Source of the DNA: Rebecca billardiae RCC1528
Taxonomy: Eukaryota > Protista > Haptophyta
Direction: 5' to 3'
DNA length: 64,000 bases
Assembly (NCBI GenBank): GCA_965240325.2
Contig: OZ251229.1
Location: forward strand, 434,001-498,000
Below, one piece after another: positions 5,951 to 64,000 of this stretch. The notes beneath the pieces were generated by a model. That model ran no database searches. It had not been told where the DNA came from and saw nothing but the letters and a program-made list of their open reading frames with translations. Each line of letters opens with the position of its first letter. The first letter of the stretch is position 1. Made by a program: the position numbers and the translations under genes.

Positions 5951-7803
5951 CGCTCCTGCCGAGTGCCGCTCCTGCCGCTCCTCCTCGCAGCGGCACAGAA
6001 CTCAGAAGCGACTGGCGGTCGGAGTGGTCCGCACCGGCGCGCCGCGACGCGGGCACGTCGGTGCCCGAGGCGCCAGCGGCGGTCCCGCAGCCCAGACACA
6101 TCATGGACAGCGGTGTGATCATCAACGATGGGCAGCTCCGCGCCATTCGACGTCAGACAAGGAGTCGGCACTCACTCGGACTCTCACTCACGGTGCAACT
6201 CTGTCGGGCCGTCGGGCGTCCGGCAGTCGTACTCGGTACTATGGCAGTCGGGCACTCTCGAGTCTCACGGCGGGCGGAGTCGGCGGCTGCGGGTGCCACT
6301 CGCATCTGGCAGGCAGCATCATCGGGCCCGCGGCGGGCCCGGGGCGCCCGGGCCTCTGTGTCATCGTCACATTCACGTCAACGTGACTCCGGTGACTCGT
6401 GACTCGTGAGTCCGCGCGCTTCAGACGTCTCCGGCCTACGGCCGAGCACTAGCCAGCCGATCAGTCTACTAGTAATACTACTACTAGCTGAGGACAGTAC
6501 GGTCCGTGATTCATACTGGCTACTGCCGTGATGACGGCGATTCTGAATCTGAGTCTTCTGATGAGTTCATCATCAGTCTGATGTATTCTGTTCGGATGCG
6601 CGTGCACTGAGTCTGATCACTGATGTCCGCGGACTGATGAATCGGCCAATCGGCAATCGCCAATTCGGGGATTGAACTTAAGTTATAAGTAGCCGTACGT
6701 ATAGCTCGACAGACAAAGAATAATTGAGAATAGGATTCAACTAGTCTGAAGTTACGACGCGCGCGACGACTATATCGATTATAGTGGGGTCAGAGCTCCG
6801 ACCGTTACACTCCCGGGTGCCACAATCTCCCGAAATCTCTTAGCATGAGCTATCACATGGGTATTTACTTGGACGAACTAGTTAGTAGTTAGTAGGCGTT
6901 AAGGCTTAATTCCAGGGTGTAGAATCCGCCTGGCCCTGTGCCAATTTCAGACTGCCAAAATGTGATCTAGACGGTGCGATTCTGGTGCACATAGCGAGAT
7001 CACCTTGGAGATCGTGTATCATATCTCCCCTACTTAATGTTGCCGAGATCGCGTCGAGATTGAGGTCGTATATCTCCAGTAGGTGACATTTTTTCGCAAA
7101 ACTTGTCAGCGTGACCCCAGCTCATTTCAGGCGAATATTGACATCCCGAAGTTTGAGAGCCTCATCTCAAGACGACAGGAAGTTGGATTTTGGGCCACGC
7201 ACCCCCCAGTGGGGCTCTGACTGACCGGCCCTCTATATCGAAGATCGAATATAAGAGACGTGCGCACACAGCTCAGGCAGGCGAGATTGACGCACAGTCA
7301 GCCGACCGGCCCGATGGGCCGAGCCCGATGGCCGATCAGGCGATCACGAAATCATGATGCTCTGTTGCCTCTGTTCCCCTCAGACCCTCAGTCACAGAAT
7401 CGCAGCAGATCATGCTCGGCCTGATGTTGTTGGCTGTCTGCGTGTACACGAACAGCGATGGCCAGCTCAACGCGAGCACTTCTCCGGGCGTGACGGAATG
7501 CGTCTCCGTGCGCACCTCTTCTGCCGCTTGCGAAAGACCCGTTGCACGGGTGAGTAACCGTGAGCGTATGAAAAAACGACATGCGTATGAAATGTCGGTT
7601 TTGTCACTCGCGCTGCCGCATGGCTGACGCCCGCGCCGATCCGAGCGGAATGGGGCATTGCGAAGCCGATTCGCAATGCCCCAATCCAATCGGCATGTCA
7701 ATCGACCCAACCGTCGCTGAGAACGAACGACAAAACCCAAGGCAGGTGCCCACCAAGGCCCGCGCGCCAGCAGCGTGAACGCGCGGTCGCGCAGAGGTGG
7801 CCA

Positions 7804-8497
7804 ATGCAGAAGGCATCAGCCAATGCTGCTGCCTTCGGCAAGCGCGCCACCTCAGCGTCAGCATCGGGTGGGACCGTGACGATATATGCCCTGGATGCGG
7901 CTCCAGCCAAACGCCCTCGACACGGGGAGCCGCCATCGGCAGCGAGCGCGCCACGGATACATACACGTGCTGTCCTCGTGAACGAGGATTCAGGAGACGA
8001 GGCGCCGGCGGCTCGGCCCGCGATGCGCAGGCAGGCTGGAGTGGCTCACGCTGCGATCGCGTGTACGGGTACAGAAGGCGTGCGCACGCAACAACACCGC
8101 CTACGTGAAGCGCGTGGGCAAGCTGCTGAAGCTCTCACGATGCGTGCGCGCCTTCCTTCTCACCTCTGCGCTCGCCGACCGCTGCCTTCCGCGCGGCAGA
8201 CAGGGGACACCTGCCACCTGGCGCGCACGACGCAGCGTGTAACGCAGAAGGTGGTAGATCCGCTGCCACGCTCCCGCTGCCGCTGCTGCCGGCGGCAGCG
8301 GCATGCCCGAGGCGGCGACGGTGACTATCACTGCCAAAGTGTCGTTTTTTCGGCGCTCACGCGTGCAACTGGTGGAAAGCACTGCGAGGGCAGCGAAGCG
8401 CGCGCCGCTGCTCAGCACGCGCTCGGCGCTCCAGAGGCGGACGAGAATCGACGATGAGAATCTCGTCGTCTGGCGGGTGAAAAAGAAAAACTCATAA
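7804..8497 (+). other. Possible short or degenerate coding region of unknown function
   Basis: Protein-like stretches in two frames (MQKASANAAAFGKR...; MPEAATVTITAKVSFF...VVWRVKKKNS) with no recognisable domain. Confidence 0.2.
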
Positions 8498-14939: not shown

Positions 14940-15035
14940 CGGTTTATGCAGCCTGATCATTCATAATTTTATTACCGTCACATACATCCGGTTTATGCAG
15001 CCTGATCCGTTCACATCGGTTTATGCAGCCTGATC
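14940..15035. repeat. Three exact copies of the 19-mer CGGTTTATGCAGCCTGATC
   Basis: Copies at 14940-14958, 14989-15007 and 15017-15035, in the short intergenic gap upstream of the kinase. Confidence 0.9.
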
Positions 15036-16650
15036 ATGCCGGGCTGCTCCGAGGGAGCCGCGCGGCCCCCGGTGCACTGAGCGGGCTGCCCGGCGCCGCC
15101 GTGCCCGCCGTGCCCATGCTCGAGATGGACGTGCGCGTGCACGCGCGGCGGAGGGACGCCGGGCTGGCGCTCGGCCCCGCGCCGCCGGCGCCCTGAGGCG
15201 CGTCGCGCGGCGCGGCCCACGCCGCCGAGGCCGAGACCGAGCCCGCGCTCGCGCGGCGCGGCGCGGCGCCGGGCGCGGCCGCGGACGGCGCGGCCGAGCC
15301 AGGCCGCGCTCGCGGCCGCGCGCCGTCGGCGTGCGCGCGGCGCGCGTCGGCCTGGCTCGTGGCGAGGCCGATGCTGCGCAGCGTCGCGCGCGGCAGCGTC
15401 TCGCGCGCCCTGCGCAGCAGCTTGCCGTCCGCGTTGAGCGTGTCGGACGCGAGCTCGAGGATCTTGCGCGGCTGGTTGGAGAGCGAGAGATGCGGGTGGC
15501 GCTGCGCGAGGTGGACCGCCCAGATGTGCTCGGCGAGGCCCGAGAGCTCGCGGTACGCGCCGCCCGCCTTGGAGGAGCGGATGAGGAAGGCCTGGTGCAG
15601 CGCGTCGAGCATCACCTCCGCGCGGTCCGCCGTCGGCACCGCGGGCGCGTCCACGTACCGCTCGCCCAGCCGCAGCTCGTCGCGCCACGTCGCCCACATC
15701 GCGGCGATGCGCGCGGAGAGGGCGGTGTGTCTGTCCGCGTCCTGCTGCACGCGCCTGAGGCGCAGCTCGAGCGTGTGCGCGCGCTCCTCGGCGGCGTGCG
15801 CGCGCGCGCTCGCCGCGCGCACCTCCGCGTCCGCGCGCTCCGTCGCCACGATCGCGCGCCCCTCCGCGCGCACCGCCGCGCCCAGCAGCGCGCCCTCCGC
15901 CTCGTCGTGCGCCTCCGCAAGCTCCGCCTCGCGGCCGTGCGCCTCGGCGAGCATCTGCTGCACCGTGTCGTACCGGCTGACGAACTCGGCGGGGGAGAGC
16001 GCGTCGGTGTCGACGCGCGAGCGGCGGAGGAGCTCGCCGAAGCGCTCGAGCCACGCGCACTCGCGCAGCCGCCGCTCCTGCGCGGCCATTCGCTCCTGCG
16101 CCCACGCGGCCTGCGCGCGCACGAGCTCGAGCGCCGTGCGCAGCGCGCCCGCCTCCTGCCGCAGCTCGGCGAGCTCGGCGTCGCGGCGCTCGTGGACGAG
16201 CTGCGCGTGCGCGCGCTCGTCGTCCATCGCGCGCGTCGCCGCGGCCAGCTCGCGCTCGCGCGCCTCCTCCGCATCCACCAGCGTCGCCTTCGCCTCGTCC
16301 AGCTGCTCGGCGCGCAGCATCTTGGCGCGCGTGCTCAGGCTCACCTGGCGCGCGCGGCCCGCGGCCGTGTGCTGCGAGCTCGTGACGTGGTGGCGCTCGA
16401 GCTTGTCCAGCGTGGCGCGCGACTCGATGTGCGCGAGCGCCTCGCCCGCCTTGTCCGCGCGCCGCCGCATGCGCACGAGGTGCGCGCCCATGTCGGCGCC
16501 GACCGGCTTGCTCGAGCCCGCAGCCGCGCCGCCCGCCGTGCCCGGCCGGCGGCTCTCCGCGTGGCGCGGCTCGGGAGAGGCCGCCACGGGCGAGCGCGTC
16601 GATGTCGCACTCGCCTCGACAAAGTCCCGCGAGAGATGCAGCCGCGCCAT
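15034..16650 (-). CDS. Coiled-coil protein, possibly CCDC42/CFAP73 (DUF4200)-like ciliary protein
   Basis: Long open frame rich in E/A/R/L heptads; the EFVSRYDTV segment is reminiscent of the CCDC42 family. ATG at 16650. Confidence 0.65.
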   Translation of the reverse strand: MARLHLSRDFVEASATSTRSPVAASPEPRHAESRRPGTAGGAAAGSSKPVGADMGAHLVRMRRRADKAGEALAHIESRATLDKLERHHVTSSQHTAAGRARQVSLSTRAKMLRAEQLDEAKATLVDAEEARERELAAATRAMDDERAHAQLVHERRDAELAELRQEAGALRTALELVRAQAAWAQERMAAQERRLRECAWLERFGELLRRSRVDTDALSPAEFVSRYDTVQQMLAEAHGREAELAEAHDEAEGALLGAAVRAEGRAIVATERADAEVRAASARAHAAEERAHTLELRLRRVQQDADRHTALSARIAAMWATWRDELRLGERYVDAPAVPTADRAEVMLDALHQAFLIRSSKAGGAYRELSGLAEHIWAVHLAQRHPHLSLSNQPRKILELASDTLNADGKLLRRARETLPRATLRSIGLATSQADARRAHADGARPRARPGSAAPSAAAPGAAPRRASAGSVSASAAWAAPRDAPQGAGGAGPSASPASLRRACTRTSISSMGTAGTAAPGSPLSAPGAARLPRSSPA

Positions 16651-16900
16651 CGGGCGAGGAAGCTGTCTCTTGGAGGAGCTCACTCGACGCGAGGCGCCAT
16701 GCTGGAAACAGCAAGCCAAGCCAACCGGTCAGGCGGTCACCGGTCGACGTGTCTTTTCATGGTCCGTTACTTGCGCATGATAAGAGTAGTTACTGTTTCC
16801 CGTGCCATGTGATCGCCGCGGACGCTGCTCACAGTCACTGTCCGAACAGGCTCGTCCGGCCAAACAAAGCCGCGATTCAGCGCGCGCAAGGCCGCCAAGG

Positions 16901-18910
16901 TCATCCGGCGGTGGTCGGGCGCGACAAGGCCTGCTCGCGCTCGCGTGGTGTGAGCGGCTGCTCGTGGAAGTCCTCCTCGCCGCCCACCGCCGTCTGCGGA
17001 GGGTTCATATCCGGCGCCGTCTTTGGCCTCCGAACGCCGCCGCCCGGCCTGCTCGCCGCCCTGGCTAGCCGGGCGTTTCGCCTCTGCGCCACCTGCGTCT
17101 GCACGAGGTCGAGCCTCTGCAGCTTCTTCTCGGACTCCATGCTGGCCTTCTTCATGTCCGCCTTGGTCTTCTTCTCCTTCACCTCGTCCTTGCACTCGAG
17201 GATGGCCCAGGAGCAGCCCTTGAGCGCGAGCACGATCAGCACGGCGATCAGCTCGGCCGAGAGCGTCGCCTGCAGCAGCCGCGGGTAGCCGATGTTGCTC
17301 GCGCCCTGCGCATGCGCGCGAGGGTGGGCGGGGAGCGCGCGTCACACGGCGCGGCCGCGCCACTCGGCCGCTCCGGCGCGCGAGGCGCCGCCGCCGCGCC
17401 CGCGCGCGCGCGTGCCTTGATGCAGACTGGCTCGACCTGCAGGTTGTCGCTGCACACGGGGTAGAGGAAGTTGAGCCCGTCCAGGTCGTCCTCGGTGAGG
17501 CACGTCTTCGGGTTGCGCGGGAGGAAGGCCTGCATCACCGAGTTTGCGTCGTAGCCGTCGTCCTTGGAGACCGCGCCCCACGGCGCCGAGCAGTTGTACG
17601 CGTCGCGGTCCGAGACGAAGTTGTACTCGGGGAACTGGTCGGGGTGGTCGAAGCCGAGCACGTGGCCGATCTCGTGCACCGCCGCCGCCTCGAAGTCGTA
17701 GCACTCCCAGCACGGCAGGAACACGTCGTGCAGCAGCAGCATCGGCAGCAGCAGCCCGAAGATCACCAGCACCACGTACGACAGCTTGAACTGGTGCAGA
17801 AACACGTCAGACACGGCGAAGAGCGCGTCGTCCAGCTCGATCTCGAACTTCTCGAGCTCGTCGAGCGCGCTGATCTTGCGCGTCCTGCGGGCGGCGGCCG
17901 CCGCGCGCCGCGGGGGCGGCGCGGGGCGCGAGCTCAGCGCGCGCGCGCCGCGCGCCGCGCGCGGCCGGTGCGGCCCGCGCCCGGCGGCGCGCGCACTTGA
18001 TGAACTGCTTGAAGATGCGCCAGATCTCGCCGCCGTTGTTGATGATCTCCTCCAGGTCGACGACGCCGTCCTGGTCCGCGTCGAAGGCGATGAGCATGTT
18101 GTAGATGAAGATCCGCGTGAGCTGGAACACCGCGTACACCGTGATGATCGCCGAGAAGAGGAAGAGCACGCCGAGCACGACGCCGACGATCGCGACGACC
18201 GGCAGCCCGTTCGCCTCCATCGTGTGGAAGAGCGAGCAGAAGGTGGCGTCGATGTACCAGCAGAGGTCGGTGCCGAACTGCAGCTCGACGTTGCGCAGGC
18301 TGCCGCCGCCCGCCTTCAGGTTGTTCGTCGAGAGCGGCTTGCTCGCGATCGCCTCGGGCACGACGCGCGCGCCCGAGTGGTCCTCGGGCGTCGACTGGAA
18401 GAGCGAGATCACAATCTCGGCGAGCGGGCAGGTGCGGCAGCGCGTGGAGGTGCACGCGGCGTCGGGCACGTCCTCCCACATGTCCTCGCCGGTGCAGATG
18501 CTCGTCACGTCGGTGAAGTAGATGTTCCGGTTGTTCCCCTCCCACGTCGCAAACGCGTTCTGCATGACGGCCTTGATCGCGTCGCAGTTGACAAACTCGT
18601 ACGCCTTAATCGTGGTCAGGTCGTTGCCCTCGGCGAACTTGGGCACCATGTCGGCGCAGAACTCCTCGTCGTACGCGTACGTGATCCCGCCGCCGAGCCC
18701 GTACTCCGAGCGCAGCGTCGGCGCCACAGACCACCTGTACACGGGCGGGCGGCCGTCAATGTTGGCGTGGTTGACGAGCTCGGTGATCGTCTCGATCTCC
18801 ACGTCCTCGTCGCGCAGCAGCTGCGCCGGGAAGAGGACCCACGCGTGGCAGGGCCATGTGGCGACGAGCAGCAGCAGCGCCGCGCTGACGGCGCGCCCAC
18901 CGGCCCGCAT
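16901..18910 (-). CDS. Membrane-embedded matrixin-like (metzincin) zinc metalloprotease with an internal TM-EF-hand-TM insertion
   Basis: Signal peptide; AFATWE helix; HEIGHVLGFDH zinc motif (17644-17676); Met-turn SVMQ; LTEDDLDGLNFLYP; EF loop DADQDGVVDLEE (18047-18082); three hydrophobic segments. Introns 17885-17996 (GT-AG) and 17306-17415 (GC-AG). Confidence 0.88.
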
Positions 18911-19182
18911 GGTCCGCCACGAGCCCAGCCACCGAGCGCCCGCGAGCTGGACCAGGGCAGGCCGCCACCGTGAAAGCTGCTACTGTATGCAGGTCCCCGC
19001 CGCGCTGGGCCCCGGTCGGAATGCAACCGTCAACGGCGGAGTCCGGGGGTTGCCGTCCGGCTTGGAAAAACTTGAAGACGATGGCGGCCGTGTGATCCGA
19101 AGCGGAAAGCACTGCGGCAAACCCTCACATCGCCCAGGGACGGCAGCTCGGGAGCCACGCGTCGACGCACGGCCCCGCCGCG

Positions 19183-20600
19183 ATGACGACGCAGCCGACG
19201 ATCTCGTACCTCGATGCGTTCCTCTCCGCCGCCGAGGACGCGCCGCAGGACCTCCGCCGCAACCTGCAGCACATGCGCGCACTCGACACGGAGGGCCAGG
19301 ACTTGGTCGAGCGCATCCGCAAGCTCGCCAAGGTGCACGTCACGCGCGCGAAGCGCTCGGTCGCCGACGGCGTCGAGCCGTCCGAAGAGCTCCTCCACAA
19401 GGTGCGCGGGCTCCACCGCAAGATGGAGGAGATCGGCAACGAGAAGGTCAACCTCGCGACTCAGATCCATGACATGGTGCGAGCGCGCGCGCGCGCCGTG
19501 TGCCGCCTCGCCGCGCCACTGGCGGCGTGCGCCGATCCCTCCGCCCGCGCGACCGTGCGCCCGGCTGCCACGCGCACAGGTCGATCGCCACATGCGCCGG
19601 CTGAACGAAGACCTGGCCAAGTTCGAGCAGGAGCTCGACGAGCGGGGCAAGCTGAAGGGCGCCACGGTCGCGGGCGCGGCCGGGAGCGCGGCTGCGGACG
19701 GCGGCGCGGGGCCGGACGGCGCGGAGGACGGCGCGGTGGCGGGCGGCGGCGGCGGCGCGGGCGGCGGCGCGCAGGTCTCGAAGAAGGGCCGCGGCTCGTC
19801 CAAGCGCCGAAGTGGCAAGGGCGCCAAGGCGAACACCGCCGCGGCCGACGCGGCGGCCTCGAGCGCCGCGCCCAAGGCATATCGCTCAGGCTCTGCGTCC
19901 GGCGCGCGCGCGCCCACCAAGCGCAAGAGCGAGTCGCTGGAGCTCGACCTCGACCTGGGGCCGGAGCTGATCGAGGAGGCGACGCCCGGGCAGGAGCTGC
20001 TGTACCCCGCGTTCCAGCTGCCGCTCGCGAGCAAGGAGGACGCGAGCAAGCCGCTGTGCGGCGCGATCCCCGCGGAGGACGGCGCGACGCACCCGGCGGG
20101 CGCCAAGGTGGCCGCGCGCGTCTCGCAGCCCAAGGTGGTGCCGCAGGAGTGGATCCTGGCCACCGTGTCCAAGTGGGCGGCGTCGGCGGGCAAGTACATC
20201 GTCACCGACGACGACGATCCGTCGGGGCAGACGGTGCACACGCTCCCGCCCAGCGCGCTCGCCGCGCTGCCCGTCTCGGAGCCGCCCACGTTCACGCGCG
20301 CGCACGAGTACAAGGAGGGCACGACCGTTCTCGGAATGTACCCGGACACCACGTGCTTCTACAAGGCGGTGGTCACGATCGCGCCGAGCAAGCGGGTGCG
20401 CGCGGCGCGCGCGCGGCGCGCCGCCGCCGCCGCCGCGCGCTCACGCCTGCCGCGCGCGCCCCGCCCCGCCTCCCGCGCGCCCCGCGTGTCAGCGAGAGCG
20501 CGACTACATTGTCGAGTTTGAGGACGACGTGGACATCAACGGCCACCCGACCGTCAAGCGCGTGCCTGTCAAGTACGTCGTGCCGTGGCCCTCGCGCTAG
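19183..20600 (+). CDS. SGF29: SGF29-type tandem Tudor H3K4me reader with an ING-like N-terminal helical domain
   Basis: C-terminal GAKVAARV..EWILA..KYIVTDDD..GTTVLGMYPDTTCFYKAVV..DYIVEFEDD..VPVKYVV; N-terminal YLDAFL..PQDLRRNLQHMRALD..EKVNLATQIHDMVDRHMRRLNEDL. Introns 19477-19579 and 20396-20492. Confidence 0.85.
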
Positions 20601-57805: not shown

Positions 57806-58299
57806 CTCGCCCATCAGCTCATGCACCGAGCAGCGCGACCGCGTGCGCCGCGATGACGCCTAACGACGTCTTCACTGCATGGGCCGCTGCTCGCTGGTCC
57901 CGGCAGAATCCGGGAATGGGAGACTGAGTCCATTAGTTCCCACTCCTAGTCCGGACAAAATGATACGTATACACTTGACTAATAATAAGAGACGCACACA
58001 GCTCACTGCTCAGGCAGGCGAGATTGACGCCCGCCAACTGTCACCGCACATGTTACGAAGGTCTCGGTTAGAGACACTTAGTCTGCTAAGACTTAGAGCC
58101 GTCGGCCGATGGTACTATTGGTAGCGCCGTCCGAAGTAATAATTCATTCAGCCGTCCGCACACGGTACCGAGTACAGGCTCGTCTGACATTGTCTGACAA
58201 AGAGGCAGCCGTCCCTCGCGGCGCCCCCAGACGGCTGCCTCTTCTTACAGCCGTGTGTATATATATATATATGTGTGTATATATATATAATTAATATAT

Positions 58300-58414
<115 letters not shown>

Positions 58415-58441
58415 CACACACGGCAGGGTCAGCTGGCCGTA

Positions 58442-59065
58442 CAGGCAATCGCGGGCAATAAGCAGTCAGAGATCTCACGGCTAGTCTCGGTTTCTATTAG
58501 ATAGCCGTTCGGTAGCCCGAGCGCCTACTGAGTCTCAGTTTCTTAGTTAGCTAATAGCTAGGTCCGCCCGCCGCGCAGGCCGAGGCGCGGGGGGCGCAGG
58601 GGGGCAGAGCCCCCCGCTGAGTCTTTAGAACCGGCCGGCGAGGCCGAAGAAAATTTATTTGGGCCATTTTGGAGCAAATCTGGCATGACGTTGCATGGAT
58701 TATTGGATGCTGCGGTGCACTGGCCAGGAGTCAGTCATCAATCAGGAGACTCAGTCGGGACTTGGCCTGTACCGTCGTAGTCGGGCCGCGCGCCGCGTCC
58801 CACTGGCACTGCGCCTCGGGCCCTCGGCGGACCACTCATCGGCCGCGGGCGACGTAGTCATCCCGGTTTCTTAGCGTGTGACTATATGCGTATATATATA
58901 TATAGCGAACCAGCCACGACTGATCATCGCTATTATTAGAGTCATCCGTCAGTTTCTAGGCCATATATATAGTCACTTAGTTACATCGTCCGCAGCCGAT
59001 TGAGATAGCAACGGCCCCAGTAACTTCTTAACGTGTGACAGCTCCGTATTGCCCGCGATTGCCTG
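58442..59065 (-). mobile_element. MITE family A copy 2 (inverted relative to copy 1, lengthened by small insertions)
   Basis: Same TIR CAGGCAATCGCGGGCAATA, TA flanks, and a collinear interior with 35799-36315. Confidence 0.92.
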
Positions 59066-59274
59066 TATCGCATTCGCCGTATCCGGGGCGCCTTTAATAT
59101 ACGAGCGTCAGCAGCTCAAGGTCGCCCTGGCCTCAGCCCACCAGGTACACTCCGGCTCCGGCGCGACGCAGCCGGTCACCCCGTGCGCCATGATGATGCG
59201 TCCTCGATCTGATGACGAGTCATCATGCAGACTCCTTGCGTGATGCCAATGCTCAGGCACTTGCCGTGGTACTC

Positions 59275-60206
59275 TTACACGAGACGGCACGAGGAGCAGT
59301 CGGAGTCCGACACGCACGCGTAGCCCGAGGGTGGCGGGTCGCAGCAGGGGTTGTTGCCAGCAGGTCCATTGCACCAGCCCCACTGGCTGCACGCGCGGTT
59401 GCCCTGGCAGTCAGCGTCCGAGCTGCACTTGTGCGGGGTGCCAAGCGAGTTCTGCCACCTGCTCCGCGGAGGCCAGGGTCAAGCACACGGGCAAGGCACG
59501 GGGAAGCACAGAGTCAGAGTGTGGTGCGCATCAACTAATGGAATGATTGCAATGAAGGCGCTCGGTGGGCGCATACGCGCCAAACGTCGCGTGAACCACC
59601 CAGGCAGCACGTACTCGTTGACGGTGCAGCGGGGCATGATCGAGCTGATCGGACGGCACGTGGTGCAGTCCGACTTTGACACGCACTGGAAGCCTTTGGG
59701 TGGCGGTGAGCAGCAGGGGTTGTTGCCAGCAGGGCCATTGCACCAGCCCCACTGGCTGCATGCGCGGTTACCCTGACAGTCCGCGTCCGAGCTGCACTTG
59801 TGCGGCGTGCCAAGCGAGTTCTGCCACCTGCTTGGCAGCGTTGTCGCAGGAGCGCGCCGCGCGCGTTGTCGATTGTTTCATGTTCACAAGGTGCATCACA
59901 TGCGGTCCGATCGGACTTCACGCGGCGCGGGGCGGGGTTTGCATGCGCGCACTCGTTCACACCACAGCGGCGCCACCACTTCTCAATGTCCTGAGCCTGC
60001 GCCGCCGGGACGGCGGCTGACTTCTCGATCGGCATCGGCTCGGTGACCTCCGCAGCGACAGGCTGGTTGCCGCCCGTAGCGACAGCGATGCCGACGAGGG
60101 CGACGGTTCCGACGAACCCCAGCACTGCGAGAGCGCCGAGCATCACGCGCTTGGGCGAGCGGCTCTCGCCGGTGGTGGGCGCCTCGTTCTTCTCCGTGTC
60201 GATCAT
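59275..60206 (-). CDS. Type II membrane or secreted Cys-rich protein with two tandem hevein-like (CSQWGWC) modules
   Basis: Exons 60206-59953, 59827-59615 and 59458-59275 splice in frame (GT-AG, both introns phase 2); repeat EWQNSLGTPHKCSSDADCQGNRACSQWGWCNGPAGNNPCC occurs twice; N-terminal TM VMLGALAVLGFVGTVALVGIAVA. Confidence 0.85.
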
Positions 60207-61585
60207 CGATGCTAGTTTGGCGGGGGCGGGGCGCAGCGTCGTCGGGACGGTCTTGTGGTAATTAGGCGAGGGCGTCGGAAGCCGCGCCCGCGCGGCGCTC
60301 GCCAGCGGCGGCGGTGGGATACGGTACAGTTTACTAAGAATAAGAGACGCACACACAGTACCGTATCGGCGTCTCCTCAAATACAGTGCTATGTTCAACC
60401 AGGATCATCCTCATCGATGATCGATCTAGTTAGAAGGGAGTACCCAGACGGTTGTACCGTTGTAATCGCGCGGTTATTTCGTCGCTTAATGATGATCGAC
60501 GACGATGATGACGAATATGTTTCGAGATGCGCCGCGATCAGGGAGAGCGCGAATGCGCGATCGAAAGCTGCAGTGATGCGCGCAACGACTGTGTTGCGAT
60601 AGCCCGACGCCTGAAATTTGCAGCTGATCGGGCAAAGGCCGATCAAAGGAAGCGCAGTGCACCCCAGCGGCTGGCTAGATGTATCCCGCGCCAGTGGTCG
60701 CATATCTGAGGCACTGTCCAATGTGTGCACGCGATTCCCGCCGGCTCGGCCTCAGGTCTCACCTGCTGAGGAGTGACTAGTGCTAACTAAGTCAGACCCG
60801 GCCGGAGGCAGCACCGCTGACGCAGCGCTGTAGACAGTGTACGGACTGTCTGTCTGTCAGTATCACTAATCGATCAAGACTACCGACTGATATGTACAGT
60901 ACTACGGTGTATCCAAGGTGGCGTCACGCGGCGTGGAGTCCGGCGGGTCCATTCAGGAGCGCAGCATCGACGGTGTGTCTGCTGCCAGCCTGAAGCGGTG
61001 ACGCACCGTGTCCGTCCGTGTGTCAGTGCCGGTCGCGGCCTGACTCCCTCGGAGACTCCCAAGGCGCGGCCCCTCATATTGTTTAAGCTCAGAAGGTCAT
61101 AAATAACTCCGCAGGACGAATCACAATATATATATATATATATATATATGTGGGGTTATTGGTACAATAACTGATTGTCTAAGAGGACGACAAGAACGCC
61201 GGGCGCCAGCGCCGCTCATCAGCCACATCGCCCTCTACCAGACCATCGCCTCAAAGGGCGCTGCTCCCGGACAAACAGTCTGTCCGGGTTGTTCTGCCGC
61301 CCAGGAGATCGATTTCCGGCGCCGGCCTCTGCCGCCTGCTTCGCCAGGCGCGGCGTGCGAGATGGCTCCAGCCAAGCTCGTCCTGCGTCGCCGGCGGCGG
61401 CGGCTCGCACGCGGGTGGCGCGTCGCGTGCACCGACCAACATCTTTCGGCACTGCCGCTCGCCAAGGCATGAGGACACGTAAATCCCACTGAGTAGGAAC
61501 ACACGCAGCCGCCTCGGCATCGACATGCCAGGCGGCGTGCCCACCTTCGGCCAGCAGTTGGCGTCGGCGTTCACGAGGACGGCTA

Positions 61586-61619
<34 letters not shown>

Positions 61620-61869
61620 AGCGCTCTCTTGCACCGAGTACCGGCTTAATACCGACTAAACCGAGTAACAGTGAACTCGTGCTGGCCCGGCTACGGTTGC
61701 TGTATTAAATGTCTGCTATAACTAATATATATTATGCTGCTGATCTAAGTATTATACGACTAGTCTCGGTCTGATGAGTAGTCAAGTGACGAATATATTC
61801 GTCTTGACATACTGATCATCATGATGAATCCGCAGAACTTCAATGATCATCAACGACAACGACCATATA

Positions 61870-62635
61870 TCGTCCGGTGGATTTGCATTTGGCACACCTG
61901 GCTGTCTCCCAGAGCACTCCTTCTTGGCCGCCGCGACCGAGCGCGCAGGTAGATACGGATACGGGATACGGCGCTCAAACGGTTTAGTTGCCAGTGTTCG
62001 TGCTTATTATATTCTTCTAAGCTCGCCTAGGTGACGCGGCAAAAGAATCCCGAGCTTGCTACGGTCTGTGGTTCGTGAGATATAACCTCCGCCATCTCAC
62101 AGTGAAACCACTGGGGAACAGTCAACAGGGCCCAAAAATCACATGGGCACCACGTTTTCGGCCATATAACTACCGCGGCTGCCGCTTGCCGGAGCTACTC
62201 GCCGCTAGGTCGGCGGGCGGCGACATCGACTACGACCTCACCCTCATCCAAGTGCTCCGGAAGGCGCTCGGCAGCGGCGGCATCGCCATCTGCCGTCGCC
62301 GCCGCGTGCCCCAGGCCGAGGCGGTGCTCCACCCCGGCCCGCCGCTCCCGTAGGGGGGCAGGGCTGCGGGTGGCGCACTGTCTGACCTGGAAGGAAGGCG
62401 CGGACGCATTCTATGTGTCGTCTGTTGCACTCTGAGCCTGACGCTTGTCCGATGCTGCCACGCCGTTAAATATAACTACCGAACGGGAGCAGATTATCGA
62501 GACGCGCGGTTTGTTTCCCGCAGAGCTCTAAGCTCAGCTTAGGTCTTCGCTCGACCACCGCGAACCGCGTTGCCGAGGTTACATGGGCAGCGGCAGCGCG
62601 GACAAAAAGGTGCCAAATGCAAATCCACCGGACGA
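61870..62635. mobile_element. MITE family B (26-bp perfect TIR, TA target duplication)
   Basis: TCGTCCGGTGGATTTGCATTTGGCAC at 61870-61895 and its exact reverse complement at 62610-62635, each flanked by TA. Confidence 0.85.
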
Positions 62636-62643
62636 TAGGCTCC

Positions 62644-63432
62644 TCAGACAGCGATCAGATCGAACTTTGTGCCCACCTTGTCCACGATCGCGCGGTTGAC
62701 AACGGTGAAGTAGGAGTTCCACGAGTCCGCACCAAGGCTCCACGCCGCGCGCGCCGCGTCCGCATCGGCCGCGGCCGCAGCTCGTGCGAGCTCCTTCAAC
62801 GAATACCCGGCCTCGTTCACGTAGAAGCGCGCCAGCAGCGCGTCTCGCTGCGAGGCCGAGTTCTCCGAGATGAGGAGCGCGTTGCCCATCAGGATGCACT
62901 TGATCAGTGCCGCGGCGATGGGCGAGGGGCGCTGCTTGCCCTCGGCCACGGTGCCCGATACGGCGGCACTGACGGTCTCCCACGAGCCCTGCTCGATGGC
63001 CTTGCGCAGCGCCGCAAACTGCTCGCTGCCCACCTTGACGTCGTCAGCGTACTTGCTGTACCCGTTGTAGCGCTGCTGGAGCGGCACGTACGTGCACGCA
63101 TTGTCGACGCAGCTGCCCCACGCGTTGTACGCCGGCTCCTTTGCATTTGCGAGCTCCTTGATGTCGAGCTTGCGCGGTGGGACCACGGCGTAATCGTAGT
63201 AGAAGTCCTTCTGGATGAGTGCGCCCTTGTTGGTGCCGCGGTCACGATCAAAGAGCGCGTCCTTGGCGCCGCATGCGTCTGGCAGGAAGGCCGAGGCCAC
63301 TGCACCGCCCACGGCGAGCACCGCGCCCCGGCGGCCGATCTGCGGCGCCAGCGCCGCGCCGGTCGACGCACCTGATGGCGCGGCCGGCGCGACCGTGCCG
63401 AATGTGACGCAGAGCGCGATTGCCGCCGCCAT
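62644..63432 (-). CDS. Nuclear-encoded plastid thylakoid-lumen protein (twin-arginine signal, predicted helical, possibly PsbQ-like fold)
   Basis: Hydrophobic N-terminus and Ala/Pro/Ser transit region, IGRRGAVLAVGGAVASAFLPDACGA Tat-type signal, then a compositionally normal helical domain; intronless. Confidence 0.75.
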   Translation of the reverse strand: MAAAIALCVTFGTVAPAAPSGASTGAALAPQIGRRGAVLAVGGAVASAFLPDACGAKDALFDRDRGTNKGALIQKDFYYDYAVVPPRKLDIKELANAKEPAYNAWGSCVDNACTYVPLQQRYNGYSKYADDVKVGSEQFAALRKAIEQGSWETVSAAVSGTVAEGKQRPSPIAAALIKCILMGNALLISENSASQRDALLARFYVNEAGYSLKELARAAAAADADAARAAWSLGADSWNSYFTVVNRAIVDKVGTKFDLIAV

Positions 63433-64000
63433 GATGATCTGATTACGACCTGTACGTACGATACAGTTTATTTGTTTTAACGTGCGTAAGGCTCACGGTG
63501 GCAGGTTGCCGCGCCATCCTTCATCGCACGCTCTCCGACGAGAGACCTGGAAACTGGTTTTGAACTACCCATGACCTCAGACGCAAGAGCACGCCAGTAC
63601 AGTTTACTATGTTTTAACGTGCACACTTGGTTAAGGCGTGATTGACGCCATCCAACACTGCACAAAGACACCGCCACAGTACGCAATAGGGAGTCCCCTC
63701 CCGCCGTCCGTGGTCCGTTGACTGACTCGGTCTTCCAACTCCAAGACAAGAGTAATACTGTCAGCTAACTTCGTAACTAGTAACTGTTGACCAATCTTGT
63801 GTCAATGATGGTGTCATCCGGTCTATCGGCGGCACGATTGAGCCCGCCACGCGCACACAATTCACGACTACGAGTCACGGACGCGGTACTGACTGCGGAG
63901 CTCGCGCATCAGCGAAGCGTGTGCGACCGCGCGAGCCGTCCGTGACGTCCGTCACAAGTAGTCGTGTACTCTCACCCATCGGAATTCGGACCCAATGCTC

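Follow-up and report, generated by a model that had tools for sequence, protein, structure and literature searches.

Metzincins are among the best-studied proteases, and their catalytic domain is seen as compact and soluble; where it is tethered to the membrane at all, this is by a terminal anchor. In matrixins, the family of the matrix metalloproteinases (MMPs; MEROPS M10A), a short loop joins the last strand of the beta-sheet to the helix bearing the HExxHxxGxxH zinc-binding motif. Membrane-type MMPs (MT-MMPs) have a single C-terminal helix or glycosylphosphatidylinositol (GPI) as their anchor, and MMP-23 has an N-terminal signal anchor; likewise, ADAMs and meprins are held by one terminal helix or GPI. 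To our knowledge, none of the MT-MMPs, nor MMP-23, has an interrupted catalytic domain. The gene described here is of a different design. It lies on the minus strand, at 18910-16901, of a 64,000 nt stretch of the haptophyte Rebecca billardiae RCC1528 (contig OZ251229.1, positions 434,001 to 498,000), hereafter termed the window, in which all coordinates are given. Its product is an intact and apparently active metzincin of MMP-like fold with three computed membrane helices, two of which interrupt the catalytic domain and flank a loop that carries a putative Ca2+-binding EF-hand. The explanation preferred here, with a probability of about 0.6, is that the gene encodes a three-pass metzincin in which a cytosolic EF-hand is positioned to act on the active site.

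MMPs are the nearest of the described systems in predicted fold, and they share with this protein the zinc motif and the Met-turn; MT-MMPs are additionally alike in being membrane-bound with a catalytic domain outside the cytosol. They differ in that approximately 135 extra residues, including two membrane helices, are found here between strand beta-5 and the zinc helix. A second parallel is provided by ADAM17 and iRhom2, as ADAM17 is a membrane metzincin whose outer activity is controlled from the cytosol. In that system, however, the polytopic partner is a separate protein and control is exerted by phosphorylation, whereas here the helices and the candidate sensor are part of the protease chain. 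Control of a membrane protein by an EF-hand adjoining a transmembrane helix is known from NOX5, DUOX and STIM1, but the outputs of these are oxidase activity or the activation of a channel, and none is a protease. Similarly, Ste24/ZMPSTE24 (M48), site-2 protease (M50) and BlaR1 (M56) are zinc metalloproteases in which membrane helices alternate with catalytic elements; these, by contrast, are gluzincins or intramembrane proteases of other folds, without the beta-sheet and Met-turn fold of metzincins. The original prediction for this locus, made by a model from the DNA letters and a list of open reading frames, stated that it knew of no described protease with such a topology, and a literature search found none. 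A paper from 2025 reports MMP homologues in haptophytes, green algae, Pelagophyceae and Labyrinthulomycetes, and is silent on their topology and on inserts (PMC12587646).

All of the sequence elements from which that prediction was built are present in the gene, which confirms the observation. The protein of 595 amino acids (aa) starts with a signal peptide (aa 1-23; 18842-18910), inferred from a hydrophobic peak at aa 8-26 and small residues at positions -1 and -3, with a probable cleavage site at CHA/W. This is followed by the N-terminal catalytic half (18209-18838, delimited using the structural model described below), comprising beta-1 to beta-5, helix A, the CWY..FC motif and an extra helix; it contains the segments AFATWE ... 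VELQFGTDLCWY, and its CWY is at aa 217. The first transmembrane helix, TM1 (aa 235-262; 18125-18208), peaks at 3.04 on the Kyte-Doolittle scale over 19 residues, and is followed by the putative EF-hand Ca2+-binding loop DADQDGVVDLEE (aa 277-288; 18047-18082) and by TM2 (aa 340-361; 17716-17781), with a peak of 2.46. The zinc-binding motif HEIGHVLGFDH (aa 375-385; 17644-17676), within PCWECYDFEAAAVHEIGHVLGFDH, can be read directly from the sequence, and the Met-turn ANSVMQA (aa 418-424, with SVMQA at aa 420-424; 17527-17547) comes after the zinc helix and before helix C, the order seen in metzincins. TM3 (aa 469-492; 17213-17284; peak 2.25) and a Lys/Glu/Arg-rich, charged C-terminal tail (aa 493-595; 16904-17212), predicted to be cytosolic, complete the protein. 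CWY and HExxH are 158 residues apart in this protein; in the family of homologues described below, their median spacing is 129 (range 104-257), in agreement with the roughly 130 inserted residues originally proposed.

Homologues have a similar N-terminal pattern, which is followed by a conserved Trp-Val. This dipeptide, found directly after the predicted cleavage site (A/WV; 18830-18845, minus strand), is retained between clades that are only 25-30% identical. The Trp resembles the aromatic +1 residue of targeting signals for complex plastids; plastid targeting was set aside as the principal interpretation, given that the 30 residues beyond it are acidic and in part structured. By analogy with the activation of MMPs or astacins, A/WV may instead represent a functional mature N-terminus.

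The coding sequence of 1,788 nt (595 codons) is assembled from three reading-frame segments. Exon 1 (17997-18910), defined by open reading frame (ORF) and peptide mapping, encodes aa 1-304 and two bases of Lys305, covering the signal peptide, the N-terminal catalytic half, TM1 and the EF-hand. It is separated by a GT-AG intron of 112 nt (17885-17996), across which the frame changes from 0 to 1, from exon 2 (17416-17884; aa 305-461), which encodes the rest of the cytosolic module, TM2, the zinc helix, the Met-turn and helix C. Intron 2 (17306-17415), 110 nt long, has GC-AG boundaries (AAG/GCACGC...CAG/GGC) and precedes exon 3 (16901-17305), containing aa 462-595, with TM3 and the charged tail, and the stop codon. 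The need for a non-canonical GC donor in intron 2 is what might be expected if the gene model were an artefact, combining exons from different transcripts, or if the locus were a pseudogene. Against this, homologues encode the full architecture in one uninterrupted ORF: P0003, of 611 aa and 57% identical to exon 1, is encoded on a 2,082 nt contig (L001), and P0015, a distant member of 620 aa, on a contig of 2,234 nt (L002), both contigs being of the length of an mRNA. The spliced protein is collinear with P0003 from end to end, the alignment being gapless at junction 2 and having one gap of a single residue, eight residues past junction 1. Use of the GC donor preserves EPVCIK/GASNIGYPRLLQ, which matches EPVCIQPERNIGWPRLLQ of P0003 without gaps and includes a Cys with 100% conservation across the family; an alternative GT donor at 17436 was rejected, as it would remove this Cys. 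In five related genomes, ORFs (P0004-P0008, 50-58% identical) stop at the same Lys as exon 1, and the position of intron 1 is therefore conserved. Furthermore, the three exons contain no in-frame stops and retain all catalytic and family-invariant residues. An artefactual or decayed gene is hence highly improbable, and the proposal that the exons form one protein is upheld: that the two catalytic halves are one gene product is supported by the single ORFs in which homologues hold the whole architecture. Both introns are approximately 110 nt long and extremely GC-rich, in a window with a G+C content of 70%. Reading through intron 1 generates an ORF of 367 aa, which is the deposited protein P0001.

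Sequence searches identify only the zinc helix of this protein. The Pfam model Peptidase_M10 matches exon 2 (1.7e-6; 28.4 bits against a cut-off of 24) over positions 103-126 of its 159, and the N-terminal half has no Pfam match; Pfam searches with the exons, phmmer and a profile search of the PDB all detect the zinc helix alone, such that the nature of the N-terminal half is undecidable by these means. It was addressed with AlphaFold2. A first run with 10 sequences gave a predicted local distance difference test (pLDDT) score of 51 and was discarded; a model of residues 25-505 of P0003, the nearest relative of full length, based on an alignment of 100 sequences, had a mean pLDDT of 89 and a predicted template modelling score (pTM) of 0.86. 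When this model was compared with 48,161 PDB representatives using VIA-align, the best matches were proMMP-9, MMP-2, MMP-20, gelatinase A and MMP-12, with Z scores of 11.9-12.6 and a root mean square deviation of 2.5-3.0 A over 148-158 residues. These alignments run from around residue 24 of the model to around 415-425, across the insert and through both halves, and that with MMP-20 covers nearly all of the 160-residue domain. Further matches were to serralysin (Z 9.8), snapalysin (9.4), myroilysin and astacins (8.0-8.5), the ADAM17/iRhom2 complex 8snl (7.3) and ADAMs (approximately 7); M48, M50 and M56 proteases were absent from the top structural matches. With Foldseek, the top 50 matches in the PDB were likewise all MMPs, but had weak E-values of around 0.01, probably because the insert breaks the alignment.

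In the model, the first half is arranged as beta-1, helix A, beta-2 to beta-5 and a short extra helix after CWY..FC. The insert then consists of a 38-residue helix (TM1 with an extension), starting around ten residues past this extra helix, followed by the loop, a 21-residue helix, a turn, a 15-residue helix and the 27-residue helix of TM2, which ends a few residues before the zinc helix. The second half follows with the zinc helix, the Met-turn region, helix C and a 33-residue TM3 helix, beyond which the tail forms a long helix. Both halves are thus predicted to form a single MMP-like domain on one side of the membrane, in line with the original prediction, which placed both halves on the lumenal or extracellular side, and the insert would occupy the connection between beta-5 and the zinc helix. 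Of the features of a metzincin, HExxHxxGxxH and the Met-turn are present in the window protein itself, and a single domain with a five-stranded sheet and helices A, B and C is predicted for P0003.

A profile built from ten sequences, searched against 1.84 billion representatives of clusters formed at 50% identity, matched 1,775 of them at E<=1e-3, 1,254 at E<=1e-10 and 519 at E<=1e-30. Of these, 161 proteins were fetched and classified with rules of our own, based on sequence patterns and hydropathy. CW[YF] and HExxHxxGxxH were both found in 130, which are taken as the members of the family. Exactly two hydrophobic 19-mers lie between these motifs in 116 of the 130, a recurrence beyond what chance would give; the first hydrophobic segment is present in 125, and 114 have exactly one such segment after the zinc site. 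Twelve Cys, six in each catalytic half, are 97-100% conserved when 100 of the members are aligned; the four that flank the hairpin (CWY..FC / PCWECY) are invariant and may, as the original prediction suggested, staple it through disulphides. The sequences of the hairpin helices and of the intervening loop, by contrast, are not conserved across the family. As judged from these comparisons, it is the hairpin, and not the EF-hand, that is the defining feature of the family. Clusters in the ESM Atlas that resemble the model, or a further homologue, P0012, are 100% eukaryotic where their taxa are known, Haptophyta being the commonest, and the clusters that rank next consist of ordinary matrixins from bacteria, archaea and viruses, which do not have the insert; the restriction of the hairpin form to eukaryotes is based solely on the taxa of these clusters.

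TM3 (positions 435-450 of the model) has Gly, Arg and Pro columns, at its entry or inside it, that are 98-100% conserved, and the sequences of TM1 and TM2 lack conservation. Because of this difference, TM3 may do more than anchor the protein.

In the alignment of 100 family proteins, conservation is 100% for the H, E, H, G and H columns of the zinc motif and 96% for the Met of the Met-turn, and the third His is followed by Pro (94%) and Asp (90%). This is pertinent to the suggestion that the protein is a catalytically dead pseudoprotease serving as a membrane scaffold or receptor. A point in favour of that suggestion is that there is no recognisable prodomain or cysteine switch, through which an active MMP would be held latent: PRCGxPD is found neither in the window protein nor in any of the 161 family proteins, and only around 45 residues separate the signal peptide from beta-1. 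Nevertheless, the zinc motif with its catalytic Glu and the Met-turn are intact in the window protein and 96-100% conserved in the family, making loss of activity the least probable of the alternatives considered. Nor does the family have a set of His and Asp columns matching the structural zinc site of MMPs, formed by three His and one Asp in the S-loop; of the His columns in the N-terminal half, just one is at least 80% conserved, and it is located after CWY..FC. The residue after the third zinc-binding His is Ser in matrixins, in place of the Pro-Asp found here. Owing to the lack of a cysteine-switch prodomain and of a structural zinc site, the Pro-Asp, the interrupted link between beta-5 and helix B, and a Pfam match confined to the zinc helix, these proteins are filed as a metzincin family of their own, MMP-like in fold, rather than as matrixins proper.

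The orientation of the chain in the membrane was assessed from hydropathy, the signal peptide, the placement of Cys residues and the bias in charge. Across the family, the 15 residues adjoining the hairpin helices contain a mean of 4.1 Lys and Arg where they face the loop and 2.0 where they face outwards; these residues make up 15.5% of the loop and 16.8% of the tail, compared with 7.6% and 6.0% of the two halves. All twelve of the family-invariant Cys are in the catalytic halves. It is therefore most likely, from these sequence characteristics, that both halves are outside the cytosol and that the loop and tail are inside, the arrangement originally proposed. The hydrophobic segments might alternatively be buried or re-entrant, or the topology inverted, with a cytosolic catalytic domain and a lumenal EF loop. 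Such an arrangement would accommodate the Glu within the moderately hydrophobic TM3, and two further markers lend the preferred orientation weak backing at most, in that the loops are not depleted of Cys and the enrichment of N-glycosylation sequons in the halves is only mild; sequons and Cys density were given little weight as indicators of topology. Conversely, the hydropathy peaks of TM1 and TM2, their modelling as helices of 38 and 27 residues, the signal peptide, the invariant Cys and the twofold positive-inside bias all argue against it, and it is considered very unlikely. The architecture and topology, as described, are held with high confidence.

Three lines of evidence agree with the claim that the loop between TM1 and TM2 is a canonical 12-residue EF loop. 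Firstly, DADQDGVVDLEE fits the PROSITE pattern PS00018 at all 13 positions, and a match to this pattern arose in only 41 of 20,000 shuffles of the protein (0.2%). Secondly, the positions that matter for binding are conserved in a clade of eight sequences whose 45-residue EF segments are only 22-38% identical to that of the window protein: the Ca2+ ligands at loop positions 1, 3, 5 and 12 never vary, seven of the eight have Gly at position 6, and in every one position 8 is Val or Ile and position 9 Asp or Glu. Thirdly, a profile of the 45 columns of this clade, searched against the PDB, matched lanmodulin (2.2e-11), CDPK3 (1.9e-10) and calmodulin (2.3e-7), as well as polcalcin, calcineurin B, hippocalcin and ALG-2; all 60 of the 60 matches listed are EF-hand Ca2+-binding proteins. 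The model of P0003 has a helix at 207-244, continuing from TM1, that ends before the loop (246-257), and a second at 255-275 that begins at loop position 10, in the canonical register, with pLDDT values of 86-89. Taking pattern, profile and predicted structure together, the loop is a genuine EF-hand, and it probably binds Ca2+.

Across the family, the strict EF pattern is found in the insert of 21 of the 130 members and nowhere else in any of the proteins. On a tree of 118 representatives, made quickly with FastTree from the catalytic halves only and unrooted, such that gains are indistinguishable from losses, the EF loop is present in 20 rows: four in the clade of the window protein (support 100), twelve in a second clade (support 100) and four that are scattered. 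This distribution requires at least six changes, compared with 18.7 when the labels are shuffled. On this evidence the cytosolic loop is variable, and time and again has accommodated a Ca2+-binding loop or dispensed with one, and the view of the EF-hand as a conserved hallmark is to be corrected: what is conserved is the hairpin. The cytosolic loops of P0014 and P0015 contain two EF-type loops, DDDGDGQLDDDE and DEDGDGQLS..E in that order, one directly after the other; the module of the second EF-bearing clade therefore differs from that in the clade of the window protein and is more acidic.

A number of points weigh against the preferred explanation. The loop of the window protein scores below threshold with the Pfam EF-hand models (E 0.0089 for EF-hand_5 and 0.018 for another), which is usual for a lone EF-hand, and these models match just two of the 130 inserts at E<=0.01. 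EF-hands are normally paired, and the window protein contains no second canonical EF loop. As in STIM1, where a canonical EF-hand is paired with a 'hidden' one, a conserved helix that follows the EF-hand (ELDDALFAV) could be a hidden partner; otherwise, two chains could pair. Around 83% of the family (98 of 118 representatives) is without an EF loop, and in these lineages, which are the majority, the protease must work without it, so that Ca2+ can be at most a modulator. In addition, the structural model is that of a homologue, 54-57% identical to the window protein, and the support for splicing comes from homology rather than from reads.

The principal competing explanation draws on the same observations. 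It holds that the hairpin is part of a rigid three-helix anchor that fixes the active site at the membrane, and that the EF-hand serves trafficking, oligomerisation or the binding of a partner, or has no function. The representatives without an EF loop keep the hairpin and all of the catalytic residues, and no feature of the loop is conserved across the whole family, both as would be anticipated of an anchor; moreover, a lone EF-hand is often paired with another copy, a habit easier to reconcile with Ca2+-dependent dimerisation than with an intramolecular switch. Set against these points are the mechanical path found in the model, leading from the helices of the EF-hand into TM1 and TM2, the latter ending close to the zinc helix, and the recurrence of EF loops in several clades at one site. 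An anchor-only hairpin, with an EF-hand for dimerisation or sorting, represents the main rival and a possibility to be taken seriously, while being considered improbable overall.

The preferred explanation, that of a three-pass metzincin with an EF-hand placed to influence its active site, may be described as a series of steps. Cleavage of the signal peptide would leave the half containing the beta-sheet outside the cytosol, at the cell surface or in the lumen of an endomembrane compartment. TM1 would then enter the cytosol, where a module of approximately 75 residues would bear a single canonical EF-hand; TM2 would return to the outside and lead directly into the zinc helix, the Met-turn and helix C; and TM3 would cross back, leaving the basic tail in the cytosol. 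The two halves are envisaged as joining into one MMP-like domain, pressed to the membrane by the three helices. Since TM2 ends near the zinc helix and TM1 starts near the extra helix, the active site would be close to the membrane surface, a location suited to the cleavage of membrane-anchored or membrane-proximal proteins, which would be the most likely substrates. The protease domain is presumably not sheddable as a unit, and the lack of a prodomain suggests that latency is achieved in some other way.

In the model, the entering helix of the EF-hand is a continuation of TM1, and the conserved helix after the EF-hand runs into TM2. Because of this continuity, Ca2+ would be well placed to alter the position of TM1 relative to TM2: cytosolic Ca2+ could open the EF-hand, shift the two helices and thereby affect the zinc helix. 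Alternatively, Ca2+ might control dimerisation or sorting. The stronger proposal of the original prediction, that Ca2+ gates catalysis in a self-contained, inside-out ectoprotease or sheddase, is consistent with the modelled geometry, and is regarded as speculative and rather unlikely. The comparison with STIM1 is limited in one further respect, as the EF-hand of that protein is lumenal.

At least 519 clusters of uncharacterised marine protist proteins, those that are named being from haptophytes, appear to thread their chain twice through the membrane in the middle of the catalytic domain. If this topology holds, a membrane hairpin at the entrance to the active-site helix is compatible with the metzincin fold, and the family provides a natural case of proteolysis that the cytosol could control across a membrane without a partner protein. 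The clade with the EF-hand, which includes the gene in the window, makes the idea of inside-out control directly testable, and engineered proteases with a switch inside the cell could be modelled on this design. Were gating to prove true, the cytosolic loop, which varies across the wider family, would serve in general as a slot for regulatory inputs.

No paralogue of the protease gene is found within the window. Upstream, around 270 bp (18911-19182) separate its start codon from a divergently transcribed gene starting at 19183, and this interval is probably a shared bidirectional promoter. Directly downstream, on the same strand, is an ORF of 561 aa (15034-16719, minus strand) that is rich in Ala, Glu and Arg and has the look of a coiled coil. 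The G+C content falls to 0.58-0.61 at 6001-8000 and 58001-64000, compared with 0.66-0.83 elsewhere in the window.

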